From sequence record NC_019410.1: 64,000 nt of DNA; one strand, given 5' to 3'. The translations under genes were made by a program, and so were the position numbers. The notes under the pieces are model-generated. The model was not told the DNA's origin. It made no database searches and was given only the letters and a program-made list of their open reading frames with translations. Shown here one piece after another: positions 4,518-51,753 of this stretch; the stretch's first letter is position 1, and each line of letters begins with the position of its first letter.

Positions 4518-6139
4518 AATCCGTCCCCGAAGACCTGATGGCGCACCTCCAGGAGGAGGTGACCACGCTCGCGACGTGCATCACGATCGTGCGCCAGGAC
4601 GGCAAGGCGTTCTTCATGACCGACCACGATCGGCCGATCAAGTTCGAGAACCAGACCTACGTCCCCTACGACTCCTACCAGCGCACGTCGATCCTGATGT
4701 CGTCGGAACTGGAAGTCGACACCGCCGACATCACCGCCTTCCTGACCTCGAACGGGGTGACGCGCGACGACGTGGCCTCGGGCCTGTTCGACTATGCCGC
4801 GATCAAGGTCCAGTTGCTGAACTACGAGCGGCCCGAGGACGGGGCGATCCTGCTCCGCAAGGGCACGTTCGGCGAAGTGACCATGAACCAGGACGAGACC
4901 TTCTCGGCCGAAATCCGGGGCATGACCCAGGTCCTGACCTACCGGGTCGGGGAGACCTACGCGCCCGAGTGCCGGGCCGACCTCGGCGACCGCCGCTGCA
5001 AGATCGGACTGATGCCGGAGGAATGGCAGGCCAACAAATACTACGGCCTCGACGCCTGCGTGCTGGGCGAACTCGTCGCCCCTACGTCGTTCGTCAATCC
5101 CGTGGTCGTCAACGGCAACTTCGAGGACGGCGCCCTCAACGCCGTCGTCACCGCGCCGACGGGCTGGGTGGCCTATGGCGATCCGACCAGCCGCTGGGTC
5201 TACAAGCACGACTGGTACAATCTGTCTCGCCCGCAGGTCGGCAATCAGTTCATCGCCGCCACCCGCACCTCGATCTCCGACAAGCAGGAAATCGCCGGCA
5301 TCTACCAGGACATCAACCTCGTCTCCGCCGGCGTGCCCGCCGCCGCGATCGACGGCGGCCTCTGCCGCGTGCGCTACAAGTCCTTCGCCGCCTGCCTCAA
5401 CAACCGCGCCCAATCGCGCGAGCGCCTGACCTGCATCAAGGCCGACGGCTCGGTGGAGACGATCTGGGACACCGGTGAGATCAAGTACCCCGAGGACCGC
5501 TGGATCGCGGTCAACGCCGACGACGTCCTGATCCCGGCCGGCACGCGCGTCCTGCGCATCGACCTGTGGTCCAAGAAGCGCAGCGTCCACGAGGAGGGCG
5601 CGGCCTATGACGGGATCAGCCTGTCGATCAACCTGCCGGCGGGCACGGCCGGCAACGCCAACGTCTATGGCGGGGTGATGTTCAAGTGCATCCAGGCGGG
5701 GATCAGCGGCGGCACCGAGCCGGCCTGGACCAACGAACTGGGGGCCACCTATACCGACGGCACGGTCATCTGGCAGTGCGTGTCCAACTACAAGAAGGTG
5801 GGCACGGTCGCCACGGTCGCCTCCAACAAGTCGTTCACCTCGACCGACATCACCGAGCCGGCCGGTCACTATGACGGCGGCGTGCTCTACTGGGAAACCG
5901 GCCGCAACGCCGGACGCGCCCAGGAGATCAAGACCTGGGCCGCCAACCTCTTCACGCTCTTCCAGCGCACCTACTATCCGATCACGGCGGGCGACCGCTT
6001 CGTGGTCTATCCCGGCTGCGACAAGCGCCGCGCCACCTGCGCCGACAAGTTCCACAACATCCACAACTTCCGCGCCGAGCCCGACGTGCCCGGTCAGGAC
6101 ATCTACTACCGCACGCCCAACGCTCCGGAGCAGGAATGA
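4514..6139 (+). CDS. Baseplate hub protein (DUF2163/BR0599-like) with an inserted carbohydrate-binding-like module
   Basis: N-terminal TTLATC..I.R.DG....TDHDR, central CRA.LGD.RC and C-terminal GD.F..YPGCDK....C..KF.N..NFR.EP.VPG. Confidence 0.85.
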   Translation: MKSVPEDLMAHLQEEVTTLATCITIVRQDGKAFFMTDHDRPIKFENQTYVPYDSYQRTSILMSSELEVDTADITAFLTSNGVTRDDVASGLFDYAAIKVQLLNYERPEDGAILLRKGTFGEVTMNQDETFSAEIRGMTQVLTYRVGETYAPECRADLGDRRCKIGLMPEEWQANKYYGLDACVLGELVAPTSFVNPVVVNGNFEDGALNAVVTAPTGWVAYGDPTSRWVYKHDWYNLSRPQVGNQFIAATRTSISDKQEIAGIYQDINLVSAGVPAAAIDGGLCRVRYKSFAACLNNRAQSRERLTCIKADGSVETIWDTGEIKYPEDRWIAVNADDVLIPAGTRVLRIDLWSKKRSVHEEGAAYDGISLSINLPAGTAGNANVYGGVMFKCIQAGISGGTEPAWTNELGATYTDGTVIWQCVSNYKKVGTVATVASNKSFTSTDITEPAGHYDGGVLYWETGRNAGRAQEIKTWAANLFTLFQRTYYPITAGDRFVVYPGCDKRRATCADKFHNIHNFRAEPDVPGQDIYYRTPNAPEQE

Positions 6140-40536: not shown

Positions 40537-40625
40537 TGGAGCTTCGGGAGGGACTCGAACCCTCATAGGTGTTCCCACCAGCAGAGATTTGCAATCCCGC
40601 GCCTAACCTCTCAGTCCACCGAAGC
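40537..40625 (-). tRNA. tRNA-Cys(GCA) with a long (class II-like) variable arm
   Basis: Acceptor GCTTCGG/CCGAAGC, U73, encoded CCA, anticodon loop TT-GCA-AA, variable arm GGTG-GGAA-CACC, T arm GAGGG-TTCGAGT-CCCTC. Confidence 0.85.
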
Positions 40626-40809
40626 ACAAAAGGACCTCGACGCCCGAAGGCCCGAGGTCCGATCCGTAACCAGGGGAGGGCCGTAGCTGTCCCCTGACCC
40701 TGAACGACAGGTGGCGGGCTTGGTCGTCATCCCGTCAGGCTCGCGGCGCCGCTCGCCTGAACCGCCGATATGCCACGAGGGCAGTGATCCGCAGGTCCCC
40801 ACAAATAGC

Positions 40810-40844
40810 AAAAAGGCCACGATCCGCGAGGACCGTGGCCTTTT
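40810..40844 (-). terminator. Rho-independent terminator closing the GOLLD-like RNA
   Basis: AAAAGGCCACG...CGTGGCCTTTTT on the minus strand. Confidence 0.85.
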
Positions 40845-40845
40845 C

Positions 40846-41722
40846 GTTTTCCGATGGGCTGAGACTACACCCATCAGCAATCCCGCTTCGAGGATTATTC
40901 CCCAGGTGCGACCCCAGGTATTCCCTCGACGTCCACCAGACCCCTTGCGGTAGTCCAGTCCGAGATCATCGCCGCCGTTCTTGCGCACCCCGAAGGGATT
41001 GCGGGTCTGGCGTTTGACCCATCATGGCGAACTACTCGACAGTTCCTTCCCCGCTGGGCTTGCGACCCACTCACCGGCGCTAACCGGCTGACGAAGCTCT
41101 TCCTATCGACACCTCGCGGGCTTGCGACCCTTGAGATGACTCCGTTACCCGAAGGCCGGAGCATTTGGCGACTTACGTCCGCCACTGGACCAGTCTTTGC
41201 GTTTTTCATCGAAGCGGGGATTGAACCCGCGACCGACAGCTTAAGAGGCTGTTGCACTACCACTGTGCTATTCGCAAACCCACCAAGACGTGCTGGTCCA
41301 GTTGTTCCCAGAGCTTTTGACCCCGGAAATGCAACACGCCTCATATCTTTCGCCTTGCGGGCTACTCGACTGCTCTTCAGGACTCCGTCTCCCCCAACCT
41401 TTCGGCCAGGATGCCCAGCACCCCTCGAACTGAAGCAAAGCTCTTCACCGCGAAGTGTCGAACCCTGCAACCCAAACGGTTATCCGTACTCCCTAGACAC
41501 GCTTGCACGGGATAGTCCGCTTGCGACGGACTGGCGGTTAAAGCCTCGGAGTTACCCCGGCCCCGCCTTGTCTCCCACGGTCTTCAGGTCTATCCCCTTT
41601 TGCAAGAGGCGGCCAGCTTCCCAGCCCGGACCCGTCGGCTTCCTCTGTCCTCTTGCGAGGTCGGGCGGCCTATGGGAGACCGTCCCTGTCACCCCGTCGC
41701 CGGGGCTTTCGTCAGAAGCGAC
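40846..41722 (-). ncRNA. GOLLD-like giant ornate RNA (~870 nt)
   Basis: Size, tRNA association, an embedded tRNA, GAGUA E-loop motifs, repeated GCAA tetraloops, and 3' motifs GAGCUUCGUCAGC and GGUGUAGUCUCA recalled from GOLLD; has its own promoter and terminator. Ends are approximate. Confidence 0.78.
41206..41277 (-). tRNA. tRNA-Lys(CTT)-like element embedded in the GOLLD-like RNA; acceptor stem broken, no CCA
   Basis: D arm GCAC-AGTGGTA-GTGC, anticodon arm ACAGC-CT CTT AA-GCTGT, T arm GCGGG-TTCAATC-CCCGC; acceptor TTGCGAA/TTCGATG has only 4 Watson-Crick pairs. Confidence 0.8.
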
Positions 41723-41728
41723 GATGAC

Positions 41729-41757
41729 GTTCTAGCGACAGCCCACGTCGTCGTCAA
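41729..41757 (-). promoter_or_regulatory. Caulobacter sigma73-type promoter TTGACG-N15-GCTAGAAC for the GOLLD-like RNA
   Basis: Matches the recalled Caulobacter housekeeping consensus TTGACGS...GCTANAWC. Confidence 0.75.
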
Positions 41758-41813
41758 CGACTTTTTCCGTCTCGATGTCGAATTTTTTCGACAGTCGTGG
41801 ATGACGACAGTGC

Positions 41814-41841
41814 TTGACATTCTCGTAAGCCCATGCTAGGT
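41814..41841 (+). promoter_or_regulatory. Promoter TTGACA-N15-GCTAGG for the tmRNA
   Basis: Divergent from the GOLLD promoter. Confidence 0.65.
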
Positions 41842-41844
41842 GTC

Positions 41845-42225
41845 GGAAATCGTTGTAATTCGGACAACGGAACTGGCGGCAAGACAGGGGTGCGAATCCC
41901 CTCGCCTCCACCATCGACGCCCGGCGCTGGGAGTACGCGACTCCTGGGCAGGGAGTGTTACCCTGGCGGGCTGCGGCCCGAGCCAAAGGTAGCCGGGCGT
42001 CGTTGATGGGGGCGACTAGCTTTCGATTGGCGCTCGGGACTGAAAGACGCAACGGTGGGTGACCTCCACATCGGCTTGCCGGTGATCGGGTCAGGCAACA
42101 GTAAATGTCGCCGACAATGACAACGACGTCGTGGCTTTCGCCTCGGCTCGTGAAGCCATCGCCGCCTAATAAGCGGTAGAGGAGCCCGCCGGGAGCTTGG
42201 CAACAGAATCCCGGCAACCCCCTTT
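41845..42225 (+). ncRNA. ssrA: Circularly permuted (two-piece, alphaproteobacterial-type) tmRNA; tag ADNDNDVVAFASAREAIAA
   Basis: The acceptor piece ends T arm-CGCCTCC-A-CCA at 41913. The coding piece starts GGGGGCG at 42008, giving a G3:U70 Ala identity pair. The tag ORF at 42110-42169 ends in AA followed by TAATAA. Confidence 0.92.
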
Positions 42226-42350
42226 CGCAGGCGGGAACACCAACAGGCGATCTGTCGGGCGACCGATTTCCGATCCGTGTTCCCGTCTTCGAAAGGTGGT
42301 CAGGCCTACCCTCTTGGTGTGCTATCCAAGGGTCTGGCCACTTTACAGAA

Positions 42351-42429
42351 CGCGGGGTAGAGGAGTCCGGTTGTCCTCGTCTGGCTCATAACCAGGAGAT
42401 CGTGGGTTCAAATCCCACTCCCGCTCCCA
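42351..42429 (+). tRNA. tRNA-fMet(CAT)-like
   Basis: CGCGGGG 5' end with a C1:U72 mismatch, CTCATAA loop, TTCAAAT T loop and encoded CCA. Confidence 0.88.
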
Positions 42430-42510
42430 ATGCGAACGCCGGCTGTTGAGAACGACGGCGTGACAAGCTCGGAGAGAACGAGCACTCCAGTCCGGGGTAT
42501 GAGGCCGGAC

Positions 42511-42707
42511 TAGCGGACGCCGTAGCGATTGCAGGCGTGACACCCGGAGATAGCGGGACCGGCTTTCCGAGCCGCATGCTCGGCGCGTAAGACCGCAGGC
42601 CTCGGCCATCGGGCAGTGTCAGGGGATGAGGCTAGTCCTCGGCTAACCACCTAGCGGTGAAGCTAGGGCATGCGGTTCGGAAAGCCGGGTTCGCGGTTCG
42701 TCCGCTA
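42511..42707 (+). ncRNA. Unassigned structured RNA with a 27-bp stem and multibranch loop
   Basis: 42553-79 pairs with 42668-94 (26 of 27 positions, 3 GU); outer helix 42511-19/42699-707. Confidence 0.55.
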
Positions 42708-42708
42708 C

Positions 42709-42790
42709 GAGATGGAGATGTCGCCGGTTCGAGTCCGGCAGGTCCCCCAAAAGGAGGCCTTAGCTCAGTCGGTAGAGCGCTCCTATCCCA
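42709..42790 (+). ncRNA. YrlA-like Y RNA / circularly permuted tRNA mimic
   Basis: The order is stem 5' strand, T arm (TTCGAGT), acceptor-like hairpin closed by CAAAA, D arm (AGTCGGTA), stem 3' strand. Confidence 0.7.
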
Positions 42791-42795
42791 CCTTT

Positions 42796-49629: not shown

Positions 49630-51753
49630 TTAGCTGAACGCCAGGGTGAGCGGGATGGCCTTGATCAGGCCCGGCAGGGCCTTGATGCAGGCGGTGATCT
49701 GCGCCTCGGTCGAGGCGTGGTTCATCATGTCCAGGTATTTCCGGACCGGGTGGTTGTAGTGCTTGTAGACCTTCTGGTGGCCCTCTTCGATGATCTGGAT
49801 CGTCTTGCTCTTGGGCGGGGCCTTGTAGGAGCCGTTCTCCTCATAGAGCGACTTCAGGTAGGAGCGCTCGCGCTCGGTCCATTCGGCGATGTTCGCCGCC
49901 AGGAACGGCTTGAGCGCCACGAAGAAGGCCGCCAGCGGCGAGGAGGTCATGCGGCCCAGGGCGTCGTATTCCGCCGGGCAGTGCTTGACCGCGCGGGTGA
50001 AGAACCCGAAGGCCGTCGACGAGGAGGAGAACTTCCCCAGCAGGTTGACGCACTCGTCGAGCGCGATCTTGTGCTTGGCTTGCAGGGCCGCGTCCACGGC
50101 CGCGCGCAGCGACGGGATGTTGGCCTCCTCGACGTGCTTCTGGGCGGTCGGCGAGGCGATGTAGATGTGCTTGATCCCGAACTTGTTGGCCACCACGAAG
50201 GTGTCCTCGGGCTTCTTGCGGTACTGGTCCGACGAGACCCAGGCCACGCCGCCATCGAGATTGGTCTCGACCTCGACCACCGCCCGCTGCTCGCCCGCCC
50301 GCTTGGCCAGGGCCAGACCCCGGATCGGCGGGGTGTAGACCGCCTGCGGCTTCTTGCCCTCGACCCGGCGCGGCACCACGCCGCGCAGGTCGTCGATGTC
50401 GACCTCGACGAACTTGGCCTTCGGCAGGGCGCATTTCCAGAACTTGGCGGGCTTGTCGAACGCCAGCAGGAAGTCGCCGGACTTCACCTTCAGCTTCTCC
50501 TCCAGGTAGAGGCGGAAGAGCCGGGCCAGACGGCGGGTCTCGCTCTGGCTGAACTCGCTCTGCGTCGAGGCGTCGCGCGAGGGGTCCATCAGGTCGGAGA
50601 CGTCGCGGATCACGTAGAAGGTTCGCTCGGCGTCATTGTCGAGAGACAGGGTCTTCTCGATGCGGTAGCCCCAGCGCTCGCGGTACTGGTCGAACGTGGC
50701 CTTGTAGATGCACGACACGCCCGAGAAGGAGATGCTGGAGGTGGTCAGACCCGTCGCCGGATGGGTCACCGACTTGTTGAGGAACTGCGGCTTGAGCTTG
50801 TTGTAGGTCTTGAAGAACTCGACCACCGGCTCGATGTCCTTGACCTTGTCCCAGATCACCATCTCGACCTCGGTGGTGATCTCGCCGATCTTCTTGATCA
50901 GGGCCTCGACCGCGTCGGGCTTGTACTGAATCTCTTCCCGCGACGGGATCGGCTCCACCGTGCCGATCGGCACCGTGATCAGCCATTTGCGGCCCATGTC
51001 ATGCGGCAGCGTCAGCCCGCCCTTGTTGGCCAGCGGATAGATCACGCAGCCCTGGCGCACGTTCCAGACCGAGGGCAGGGCCGAATTCTCGTAGGCCGCC
51101 CAGGTGCCGTCGGCGGCCTCGAACTGCGGGGTCCCCAGGCCCTGGCCCAGGTCGATGTTGGTGTCGAACATCGGCGAGTAGCCGAGCGCGACGTTGCGGA
51201 TTGCCTTCTCGAAGGCGGGGAAGTCCTTGGCCGCCACGCCGACCGTGACGCGCACCCCGACCGGCTCGGCGCACTCCTCGGTGCCCTGGAGCATGATCCG
51301 GGGCCGGCCGCCCTCGCCGATCGCGGCGGTATAGTGACGCACCACGTCGCCGTCATAGCAGGACACCGAGAACTGGCTGGTGTAGGCGAACGGGCTCTTG
51401 GAGCCCAGGCCGAAGGCGCCGACCAGATCGTCGGTCTGGTCCTTGTCCGACTCGAACAGCGTCGAGTAGAGGAACATCACCTTCTCGTGGCTCATGCCGA
51501 CGCCATAGTCGCGGACGTAGAATTCCGGGCGCAGTTCGTTCGGAGCGTGGACGAAGAAGGTGCCCTTGTAGCCCGAAACCAATTGGGAGTCGTAGGCGTT
51601 GGTGGTGACTTCGCGCACCATCGAGCCGATCTTGTCCGAATAGAGACCGTCGATCAGCATCCGGAAGGCCTTGCCGGAGGCCTTGATCGTGAACTCCTGC
51701 TCCTCCTCGACCCCGATGGTTTCAAGGATGACGGGCTCGGCTCCAAGACGCAT
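49630..51753 (-). CDS. rIIA: rIIA-like protein (N-terminal GHKL/HATPase fold)
   Basis: LYSDK...VREVTTNA.D, VRDYGVGM and GAFGLGSKSPFAYT; adjacent to rIIB. Confidence 0.88.
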   Translation of the reverse strand: MRLGAEPVILETIGVEEEQEFTIKASGKAFRMLIDGLYSDKIGSMVREVTTNAYDSQLVSGYKGTFFVHAPNELRPEFYVRDYGVGMSHEKVMFLYSTLFESDKDQTDDLVGAFGLGSKSPFAYTSQFSVSCYDGDVVRHYTAAIGEGGRPRIMLQGTEECAEPVGVRVTVGVAAKDFPAFEKAIRNVALGYSPMFDTNIDLGQGLGTPQFEAADGTWAAYENSALPSVWNVRQGCVIYPLANKGGLTLPHDMGRKWLITVPIGTVEPIPSREEIQYKPDAVEALIKKIGEITTEVEMVIWDKVKDIEPVVEFFKTYNKLKPQFLNKSVTHPATGLTTSSISFSGVSCIYKATFDQYRERWGYRIEKTLSLDNDAERTFYVIRDVSDLMDPSRDASTQSEFSQSETRRLARLFRLYLEEKLKVKSGDFLLAFDKPAKFWKCALPKAKFVEVDIDDLRGVVPRRVEGKKPQAVYTPPIRGLALAKRAGEQRAVVEVETNLDGGVAWVSSDQYRKKPEDTFVVANKFGIKHIYIASPTAQKHVEEANIPSLRAAVDAALQAKHKIALDECVNLLGKFSSSSTAFGFFTRAVKHCPAEYDALGRMTSSPLAAFFVALKPFLAANIAEWTERERSYLKSLYEENGSYKAPPKSKTIQIIEEGHQKVYKHYNHPVRKYLDMMNHASTEAQITACIKALPGLIKAIPLTLAFS

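Follow-up and report, generated by a model that had tools for sequence, protein, structure and literature searches.

Why should a large phage RNA carry, between two of its conserved parts, a module that looks like tRNA-Lys? The question is raised by a stretch of 64,000 nucleotides (nt) from sequence record NC_019410.1, here called the window, which BLAST matches with 100% identity over the query to the Caulobacter phages CcrKarma (Karma) and Ccr5, both phiCbK-like giant siphophages. Its noncoding RNA, described as 'GOLLD-like' in an initial annotation made from the sequence alone, is a bona fide GOLLD: Rfam cmscan places RF02032 on the minus strand at 41342..40856, where the score of 171.2 bits exceeds the gathering score of 150 and the match spans model positions 1-416 of 416 (E 2.5e-46). 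The module in its linker is very probably a tRNA-like element that takes no part in decoding. We regard it as neither a decoding tRNA nor a decaying pseudogene because its L-shape is under selection, its open acceptor is tethered at both ends and no CCA is encoded. What the element does instead can be answered more tentatively, and the explanation we favour, a selected and tethered display of anticodon loops acting as multivalent bait, is plausible while falling somewhat short of probable.

The module and the helix that closes the linker around it are laid out as follows.

41206..41277, minus strand: tRNA-shaped module in the GOLLD linker (ARAGORN, Rfam tRNA, covariation in every stem)
41274-41271/41213-41210, minus strand: acceptor core of the module, 4 Watson-Crick pairs
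41268-41254, minus strand: D arm of the module, intact
41252-41236, minus strand: anticodon arm of the module, intact
41241..41247, minus strand: anticodon-type heptaloop CUCUUAA, with the anticodon CUU at 41245-41243
41235-41231, minus strand: variable loop of the module
41230-41214, minus strand: T arm of the module, intact
41293..41302, minus strand: 5' strand of the long-range helix (ACUGGACCAG), within the P13 bulge, covarying with 41184-41193
41184..41193, minus strand: 3' strand of the long-range helix (CUGGUCCAGU), from sequence and covariation

ARAGORN calls a tRNA-Lys(CUU) at 41278..41205 on the minus strand, and the module scores 56.1 bits with the Rfam tRNA model (RF00005), covering model positions 4-67 only; the other three tRNAs in the window match positions 1-71. 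The initial annotation had read intact D, anticodon (CUU) and T arms on an acceptor with four Watson-Crick pairs and no CCA, and all of this is borne out, with one G-U pair to be added. The base of the acceptor is formed by C-G, G-C, A-U and A-U, and its top by the wobble U41277.G41207 and the mismatches U41276xU41208 and G41275xA41209 (pairs 1-72, 2-71 and 3-70), after which the discriminator A41206 is followed by AAAA; a CCA is thus not encoded, though one might still be added after cleavage. The U8:A14, G18G19, U54-U55-C56 and A58 of the tRNA L-shape are all present, and the loop C-U-CUU-A-A has the seven nt, the U33 and the purine 37 of a functional elongator tRNA; the seven-pair acceptor with free ends of such a tRNA is missing. 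Single-sequence minimum free energy folding prefers an alternative pairing, UUUGCG/CGCAAA, over the acceptor. This pairing is possible only in three alphaproteobacterial-phage sequences, and covariation is uninformative about it because CGCAAA is invariant.

Relatives were collected by joiner-motif pattern scans of viral and metagenome contigs followed by an nhmmer filter, which yielded ~60 GOLLD loci with 67 distinct linkers. BLAST added cultured phages of Mesorhizobium, Sinorhizobium and Phaeobacter, a DSS3 isolate and a phage of Xanthomonas, each of which passes the gathering threshold for GOLLD. When genome and viral collections were scanned with a general GOLLD pattern (ATAATCC...GTANTCTCAG), most matches were due to chance and about a dozen were real GOLLDs; the comparison does not extend to the tRNAs embedded in mycobacterial and Lactobacillales GOLLDs. 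Covariation was assessed in 37 distinct linkers, while 62 modules could be parsed, 58 of them with loops of seven nt. About 97% of the 67 linkers in this GOLLD subfamily contain the tRNA module.

The structure imposed beforehand on the 37 linkers comprised the long helix, a 4-base-pair (bp) acceptor core and the D, anticodon and T stems, 28 pairs altogether. Standard pairs fill 98.9% of its 1035 pair cells, compared with 76% in shuffles and 30-42% when partners are slid. Changes on both sides affect 18 of the 28 pairs, among them three in the long helix, all four of the acceptor core, all four of the D stem and all five of the anticodon stem, and covariation is seen in every stem, the T stem included. 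Beyond the stems, the tertiary pair 15:48 switches between A:U (37 of the 62 modules) and G:C (7), U8:A14 occurs in 55, and G18G19 and the T loop UUCRA in all 62. These patterns argue that selection maintains the L-shaped fold and that the module is not a pseudogene.

The same comparison changes how the acceptor is to be seen. Counted from the T-stem side, 48 of the 62 modules have four to six contiguous acceptor pairs, only two to four have seven, and CCA follows the discriminator in two. 'Positions 1-3' usually belong to a conserved joiner of GOLLD itself (GGUU), and on the 3' side comes an A-rich tract and then the invariant AAACGCAAAGACUG. The initial annotation had spoken of a lost acceptor and had proposed weighing acceptor decay against arm conservation in orthologues. 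With arms and tertiary pair covarying, random arm decay is not seen, and the open acceptor, usual across relatives, is the normal design of the subfamily, not a stem that has decayed.

Exceptions exist, and we record them here (relatives carry our L numbers). Full acceptors are rare: L438 combines a 7-bp acceptor and CCA with an 8-nt loop, and L070:7781-7940 and L455 have full acceptors followed by ACC, the L070 module being of the Ile-UAU type and nested in an extra helix. Elsewhere the GOLLD linker holds circularly permuted tRNA-like units (L151:7602-7720, L509, L495, L104 at about 4698-5182, and L296:6849-6944), in which a T arm, the acceptor 3' strand, usually ACCA, a closing loop, the acceptor 5' strand, a D arm and an anticodon arm follow one another. 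Their 7-bp acceptors covary, and ACCA is kept in L151, L509 and L104. This layout hints at two-piece GOLLDs with a free tRNA-like end; some lineages may thus expose or generate such an end, which the Karma type, to judge from its sequence, does not. In the Phaeobacter phage MD18 (L557:760-833) and in DSS3_MAL1 (L558:759-834), annotated tRNA-Arg genes turn out to be GOLLD-embedded modules with the loop CGUCUAA (G33) and only four contiguous acceptor pairs.

The inverted repeat 41302-41293/41193-41184, which the initial annotation had described as perfect, is exact over its 10 bp, and across the 37 relatives it is paired in 98.4% of cells, with three pairs changed on both sides. That the tRNA is capped directly on this helix does not hold: 16 nt (the P13 3' strand CACGUCUU plus GGUGGGUU) intervene on one side and 13 nt (AAAAACGCAAAGA) on the other. 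Since it is the 9-nt bulge in Rfam's P13 hairpin that supplies its 5' strand, the helix forms a pseudoknot relative to the outer P13 helix. The Rfam consensus and the classical-type members L328 and L395 allow the same pairing. On this comparative evidence the helix closes the linker and belongs to GOLLD in general; it is no pedestal made for the tRNA.

For decoding, the embedded copy is redundant because the phage has stand-alone tRNA-Lys(CUU) and tRNA-Lys(UUU) genes, both with clear 7-bp acceptors and encoded CCA, and the module's loop is identical to that of the former. The 20 tRNAs of the Karma tRNA island and the three beside GOLLD all match Rfam tRNA positions 1-71 (23/23), and CCA is encoded in each of the five stand-alone tRNAs that were read (Cys, both Met, both Lys). 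Several of the stand-alone tRNAs are unusually long, namely Cys(GCA) with 89 nt, Lys(CUU) with 87 nt, Lys(UUU) with 90 nt and one Met with 85 nt (located at window 40537-40625, minus strand, and at L556:37663-37844, i.e. Karma record 49663-49844). They have long variable arms, full acceptors and encoded CCA, and a Mesorhizobium phage has tRNA-Lys genes of 88 nt as well.

How little the module depends on a particular amino acid is illustrated by its closest relatives. Eight phiCbK-like phages are ~99% identical over 521 aligned columns of this region, and the sole cluster of changes falls on loop positions 41246-41242, where a 5-nt block gives the loop CUCUUAA in Karma, Magneto, Swift and RBC57, CGUCCUA in Ccr10, phiCbK and Ccr32, and CAUCCUA in BL57. 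Between Karma and phiCbK, five of five consecutive loop nt differ, against one or two of the other 478; between Magneto and phiCbK the count is five inside the loop and one in 478 outside. Third-codon positions of flanking genes diverge by 7-12%, and genome identity among phiCbK-like phages is 88.6-94.7% (PMC3556154). Set against this divergence, the confinement of changes to the loop shows strong purifying selection on the rest of GOLLD, with the loop replaced as a block or itself under selection. CUCUUAA is probably the older allele and the phiCbK loop derived, since most relatives have Lys-type loops.

The derived alleles break the rules of tRNA loops, with G33 and U37 in phiCbK and A33 and U37 in BL57. 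An identical 65-nt body thus carries CUU in Karma and UCC in phiCbK; in a second case of identical bodies, L449 has AUUUCAA (UUC) and L533 CUUUUAA (UUU), and near-identical bodies in L163 and L189 carry Thr and Asn loops. Body identity elements that match the anticodon, as in a functional elongator tRNA, are not found. The Lys(CUU) identity stressed by the initial annotation is accordingly not essential, with CGUCCUA in phiCbK and Asn-, Thr-, Arg-, Ile-, Glu- or Leu-type loops among relatives, whereas its view that the module is not for decoding agrees with the open acceptor, the missing CCA, the redundant Lys tRNAs, the exchange of anticodons on one body and the lineages with G33. A 33-37 pair closing a triloop in the derived alleles (G.U in phiCbK, A-U in BL57) was considered and rejected, since folding gives each of the three alleles a 5-bp stem capped by a 7-nt loop (-4.3 kcal/mol). 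A compensating partner that tracks the Karma and phiCbK alleles was looked for in the 5' domain, in P13 and in the 3' domain of GOLLD, and none was found.

Across the family the loop follows a clear consensus. Among the 58 seven-nt loops, C32 occurs in 50, U33 in 56, U35 in 45, U36 in 51, A37 in 52 and A38 in 56, while position 34 is free (U 30, G 17, C 7, A 4). Loops of the xUU type (Lys UUU/CUU, Asn GUU and the unnatural AUU) make up 43 of the 62 embedded modules, compared with 67 Lys plus Asn among 829 stand-alone tRNAs (8%) on the same contigs; the remaining modules have loops of the Thr, Arg, Ile, Glu, Ser, Leu or Gly type, a few of them 8 nt long. G33, found in the phiCbK clade, in MD18 and DSS3_MAL1 and in the Xanthomonas phage BUDD, is absent from all 829 stand-alone tRNAs, which argues against ribosome use in those lineages. 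Steady hypervariability of the loop was rejected: 40 of 45 close pairs share their loop, and parsimony puts position 34 in the top 5-10% of sites. The best evidence for what is selected comes from four independent cases in which the linker has lost its D and T arms and kept the heptaloop on a bare hairpin:

L350, 385-433: hairpin-only linker with CUUUUAA
L158/L172, L158:4661-4722, minus strand: hairpin-only linker with CUUUUAA
L560, about 2973-2995: hairpin-only linker with CUCUUAA
L559, Xanthomonas phage BUDD, about 680-700: hairpin-only linker with CGGUUAA

Because these linkers keep the heptaloop, the selected feature appears to be the anticodon-type stem-loop, not chargeability.

GOLLD is known to form a homo-oligomeric nanocage in env-38 and S. 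agalactiae (PMC12286853, PMC12990946), with the linker inside the 14-mer cage, where it sometimes holds tRNAs, and such cages may expose covalently linked tRNAs (PMC12286853); the RNA accumulates during lysis (as cited in PMC7567579). By homology with the solved cages, which have 10-14 copies and an inward linker, about a dozen anticodon arms would lie inside or at the mouth of a Karma cage. The working part would be the anticodon-type stem-loop (C-N-N-U-U-A-A), which might serve as tethered, multivalent bait for a reader of tRNA anticodon loops. Our best single guess at the partner is a defence nuclease of the host that targets tRNA, or some other protein that binds anticodon loops; it would be titrated or held while the phage grows lytically. 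An occasional loop replacement, such as that between Karma and phiCbK, would then mean a different target or none. That the loop is a recognition element for a trans-acting partner is possible, though we would not call it probable; that this partner is an anticodon nuclease is doubtful. A defence nuclease is attractive because the loop classes dominant here are those targeted by the PARIS nuclease AriB, which recognises U36-A37-A38 and cleaves Lys(UUU), Thr(UGU) and Asn(GUU) (PMC12409363). The likeness is a resemblance only, with the exact E. coli site U36-AAUCA present in a single relative (L153). In its boldest version, which we offer as a long shot, the subfamily would be a multivalent display of 10-14 tethered anticodon stem-loops that titrates a host anticodon-loop reader, most attractively a tRNA-cleaving defence nuclease, and hence an RNA-only anti-defence sponge, the Karma and phiCbK alleles being natural specificity variants and the permuted ACCA variants being processed to two-piece GOLLDs with a chargeable free end. 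In the papers searched we found no published link between GOLLD and decoys or defence, and no RNA-seq of phiCbK infection.

Several considerations weigh against the bait explanation. The interior of the cage, if closed, may be hard for proteins to reach, and cleavable decoys are poor inhibitors of multiple-turnover nucleases. Conservation of xUUAA could come from descent from one Lys-type tRNA combined with structural constraint. Although its loop is not that of a tRNA, phiCbK grows on the same laboratory host, and a Lactobacillus prophage could do without GOLLD (as cited in PMC7567579). Positions 34 and 35 evolve fast, with 12 and 10 parsimony changes (the mean is 4.9), yet other sites are faster still; as close pairs so often share their loop, change is episodic and no continuous arms race is claimed. 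In some lineages, moreover, a chargeable end may matter, given the full acceptors of L438 and L070/L455 and the ACCA kept in L151, L509 and L104.

The alternative that survives best, if still rather unlikely, is an RNA-RNA latch, in which the self-complementary UUAA lets the linkers of neighbouring protomers kiss within the cage and so staple or time its assembly. The palindrome is CUUAAG in Karma and CUAG in phiCbK, i.e. 4 nt are kept with a shift by one position, and a palindrome of at least 4 nt lies within positions 32-39 in 47 of the 58 embedded loops (UUAA in 42) compared with 27% of the 829 stand-alone tRNAs. A latch fits the pattern of fixed positions 35-38 and free position 34 equally well as bait does, the hairpin-only linkers keep the motif, and self-kissing loops are used elsewhere in GOLLD cages (PMC12286853). 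However, 11 of the 58 loops (UCU, UGU, GAU and CAG types) have no palindrome, four A-U pairs are weak, G39 belongs to the stem, and palindromy is confounded with Lys/Asn ancestry. No compensating GOLLD change separates the Karma and phiCbK alleles either, though a homotypic contact needs none. A different contact, kissing of the universal P13 loop (U/C)CAAAAG with C32-U36, was examined and rejected: only CUUUUAA loops fit it, those of Karma and BUDD do not, and changes at N34 have no counterpart in the P13 loop.

Also unlikely is a purely architectural role, with the compact, nuclease-resistant tRNA fold filling or bracing the linker, or aiding folding and stability, and binding no ligand. It would suit the 100% conservation of L-shape nt, which exceeds that of the loop, the variable or unstructured linkers of other GOLLD subfamilies (L328, L395, env-38) and the dispensability of GOLLD in the one prophage reported through PMC7567579. 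Left unexplained, however, are the 78-97% conservation of loop positions 32, 33 and 35-38 and the heptaloop hairpin of lineages without D and T arms.

Could the module instead be a processing signal, cut at its borders by RNase P and RNase Z in the manner of mascRNA or of tRNA punctuation, so that two GOLLD pieces remain joined by the 10-bp helix and a small tRNA-like RNA is freed? The elbow and T arm read by RNase P are intact, the long-range helix could keep the halves together, and the permuted variants keep ACCA beside a loop-closed 7-bp acceptor, much like permuted tmRNA (transfer-messenger RNA) genes before processing. Yet RNase P needs no anticodon arm, whose five pairs nevertheless all covary and whose loop is conserved, the acceptor top is unpaired in most members, and hairpin-only linkers cannot serve as such RNase P substrates. 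A mycobacterial GOLLD pseudo-tRNA, too, gave no separate tRNA-size transcript on Northern blots (Behra 2019, PMC6582537), and we consider processing quite unlikely.

Docking of the anticodon arm to 30S decoding sites, which would tether ribosomes to or inside the cage, draws on the GOLLD-ribosome pull-downs cited by Kretsch et al. (PMC12286853), on the phage tmRNA and initiator-type tRNA genes that adjoin the locus and on the canonical U33 and A37 of most loops. The poor ribosome ligands that also occur (G33/A33, U37, 8-nt loops, an A34 anticodon) and the free variation of the anticodon make this very unlikely.

That the element is a genuine tRNA-Lys(CUU), merely transcribed within GOLLD and then excised, given CCA and charged, is what the GenBank label tRNA-Lys would imply. 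The canonical loop shared with the stand-alone tRNA-Lys(CUU), the rare relatives with a full acceptor and CCA, and the 'inhibited storage' of embedded tRNAs, proposed for tRNA-Phe in a review (PMC12990946), speak in its favour. Against it stand the acceptor of only four Watson-Crick and one G-U pairs with mismatches at 2-71 and 3-70, the missing CCA that all five stand-alone tRNAs read possess, the redundancy with two stand-alone Lys tRNAs, the UCC with G33 and U37 that the identical body carries in phiCbK, and the Thr/Asn and Glu/Lys switches on near-identical or identical bodies. We consider it poorly supported and highly improbable. Also poorly supported, and hardly credible, is a decaying tRNA pseudogene trapped in the linker, for which the imperfect acceptor without CCA might be taken to speak. 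It is contradicted by the compensatory changes that all four stems and the tertiary pair show in 37-62 distinct sequences, which come from phages of Caulobacter, Mesorhizobium, Sinorhizobium and Phaeobacter and from uncultured ones.

The RNA that presents the module is considerably longer than its Rfam match. The whole GOLLD RNA runs from ~41725 to 40856 on the minus strand, about 870 nt, because a conserved 5' domain outside the Rfam model adds ~380 nt. Its parts, apart from those listed above, are these.

41343..41725, minus strand: GOLLD 5' domain, not in the Rfam model, 5' boundary approximate
41285..41342, minus strand: P13-type hairpin that opens the Rfam GOLLD model (cmscan to RF02032 positions 1-62)
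41278..41284, minus strand: conserved joiner GGUGGGU (columns 22-29 of the 37-linker alignment nearly invariant)
41194..41206, minus strand: conserved GOLLD joiner AAAAACGCAAAGA, whose first A doubles as 'discriminator' of the tRNA module
40856..41183, minus strand: conserved 3' domain of GOLLD (RF02032 alignment to model position 416)
40809..40846, minus strand: predicted intrinsic terminator for GOLLD, with a 17-bp stem and a U tract (terminator scan)

The 5' domain, the large and less conserved GOLLD portion upstream of P13 that RF02032 omits, is nearly invariant among the eight phiCbK-like phages from about alignment column 122 on, upstream of which the sequence diverges in BL57. It aligns with the region upstream of the GOLLD match in Sinorhizobium phage Phosso, and GenBank annotates no coding sequence (CDS) in 41343..41725. 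In the cmscan alignment, the outer helix of the P13 hairpin is GAGGCGUG/CACGUCUU and its loop UCAAAAG. The position of the first joiner reads (A/G)UAGGUU in most relatives, and the second joiner, in which AAACGCAAAGACUG is invariant in 37 of 37, aligns with the conserved AAAGCAAAAGUCU of RF02032. Together with P13, the variable linker and this joiner motif, the 3'-domain motifs GAGUAG, AUAAUCC and GUAGUCUCAGCC are present; for the 3' domain, identity between Karma and phiCbK outside the loop is 99.6%. The same order of P13, linker, joiner and 3' domain is found in the Mesorhizobium, Sinorhizobium, Phaeobacter, DSS3_MAL1 and Xanthomonas phages. Open reading frames over the GOLLD region (e.g. 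40895-41470 minus, 41136-41735 plus) were set aside, there being no annotated CDS and the conservation being of the RNA type.

Karma is a lytic phage, and a tRNA-Cys, two tRNA-Met and a permuted tmRNA lie within 1.6 kb of its GOLLD. GenBank places a terminator slightly downstream of the predicted one, at about 40632-40660 ahead of the tRNA-Cys, and its record annotates neither GOLLD nor the adjoining permuted tmRNA; the phiCbK-like genome paper likewise reported that Rfam gave no RNA elements except tRNAs (PMC3556154). Upstream of the 5' domain, near the likely promoter or transcript start, a 13-nt patch on the minus strand (41767-41779) contains six Karma-phiCbK differences in otherwise conserved surroundings. 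It is unlinked to the loop allele, Swift combining the Lys loop with the phiCbK-type patch. The tmRNA gene, divergent from GOLLD at 41821-42260 on the plus strand, is of the permuted, two-piece type with the tag peptide VADNDNDVVAFASAREAIAA; in DSS3_MAL1 a permuted tmRNA directly follows GOLLD (L558:1276-1564). Further on, the 369-nt spacer between the two tRNA-Met genes (42427-42795, plus strand) folds with z = -3.0. Karma-phiCbK divergence across this tRNA-Met/tmRNA region, spacer included, is 0.6%, which makes the spacer as conserved as GOLLD. Its end holds a T arm, an acceptor 3' strand and CCA (about 42722-42750), then a D-arm-like segment, and a sub-threshold Y-RNA-like (YrlA) match lies at 42715-42782 (29.7 bits, E 1e-3); the spacer may be another tRNA-like noncoding RNA.

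To our knowledge, the function of GOLLD has remained unknown since 2009, though its cage structure has been solved. With the locus described here, a bona fide GOLLD is placed in phiCbK-like phages whose host is Caulobacter crescentus. This phage-host pair is a classic one, open to genetics, in which natural swaps of the loop allele, as between Karma and phiCbK, are already at hand. If the loop does bind a defence nuclease, the ribosome or a partner loop, this would provide the first functional handle on RNA nanocages. A practical consequence concerns annotation: GenBank labels the module tRNA-Lys in Karma, Magneto, Swift and RBC57 and tRNA-Gly in phiCbK, Ccr10, Ccr32 and BL57, which inflates the phage tRNA count, and published tRNA counts of roseophages such as MD18 and DSS3_MAL1 include GOLLD-embedded modules as well.

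Embedded and pseudo tRNAs in GOLLD have been published before, with tRNAs reported in the linker J13/15 (Weinberg 2009, as cited in PMC6582537); our addition is a constitutive, selected display with an open acceptor in a whole subfamily. The statement that GOLLD sometimes contains a tRNA can thus be sharpened: in one large subfamily a selected anticodon-type loop is always displayed, and the tethered scaffold that bears it can hardly be charged. With the known linker tRNAs the Karma module shares the RNA family, the position between P13 hairpin and 3' domain, and the context of phage and tRNA island. Those tRNAs have been treated in the literature as occasional phage tRNAs, possibly stored or exposed, whereas here the module is constitutive, with an acceptor that is open by design and an anticodon that varies freely, and it also occurs in circularly permuted form or cut down to a bare anticodon-type hairpin.

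The tRNA shape is reused in other RNAs, among them the tRNA-like domain of tmRNA, bacterial YrlA, mascRNA and the tRNA-like structures of plant viruses. Of these, tmRNA and the viral structures keep a chargeable 3' end, mascRNA is excised, and tmRNA has no anticodon arm. In the Karma module the anticodon arm is complete and neither end is free. The permuted GOLLD relatives, for their part, resemble permuted tmRNA genes, one of which lies 480 nt away in the Karma phage itself. A further parallel is offered by the tRNA-Lys, -Thr and -Asn of phage T5, which resist the AriB nuclease of PARIS (PMC11464382, PMC12409363) and which, like the embedded modules, are phage-encoded, belong to the same anticodon classes and carry changes in the loop region. 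The T5 tRNAs are free and chargeable and replace cleaved host tRNAs, whereas the Karma module, being tethered and without a usable acceptor end, could act only by binding, not by decoding.

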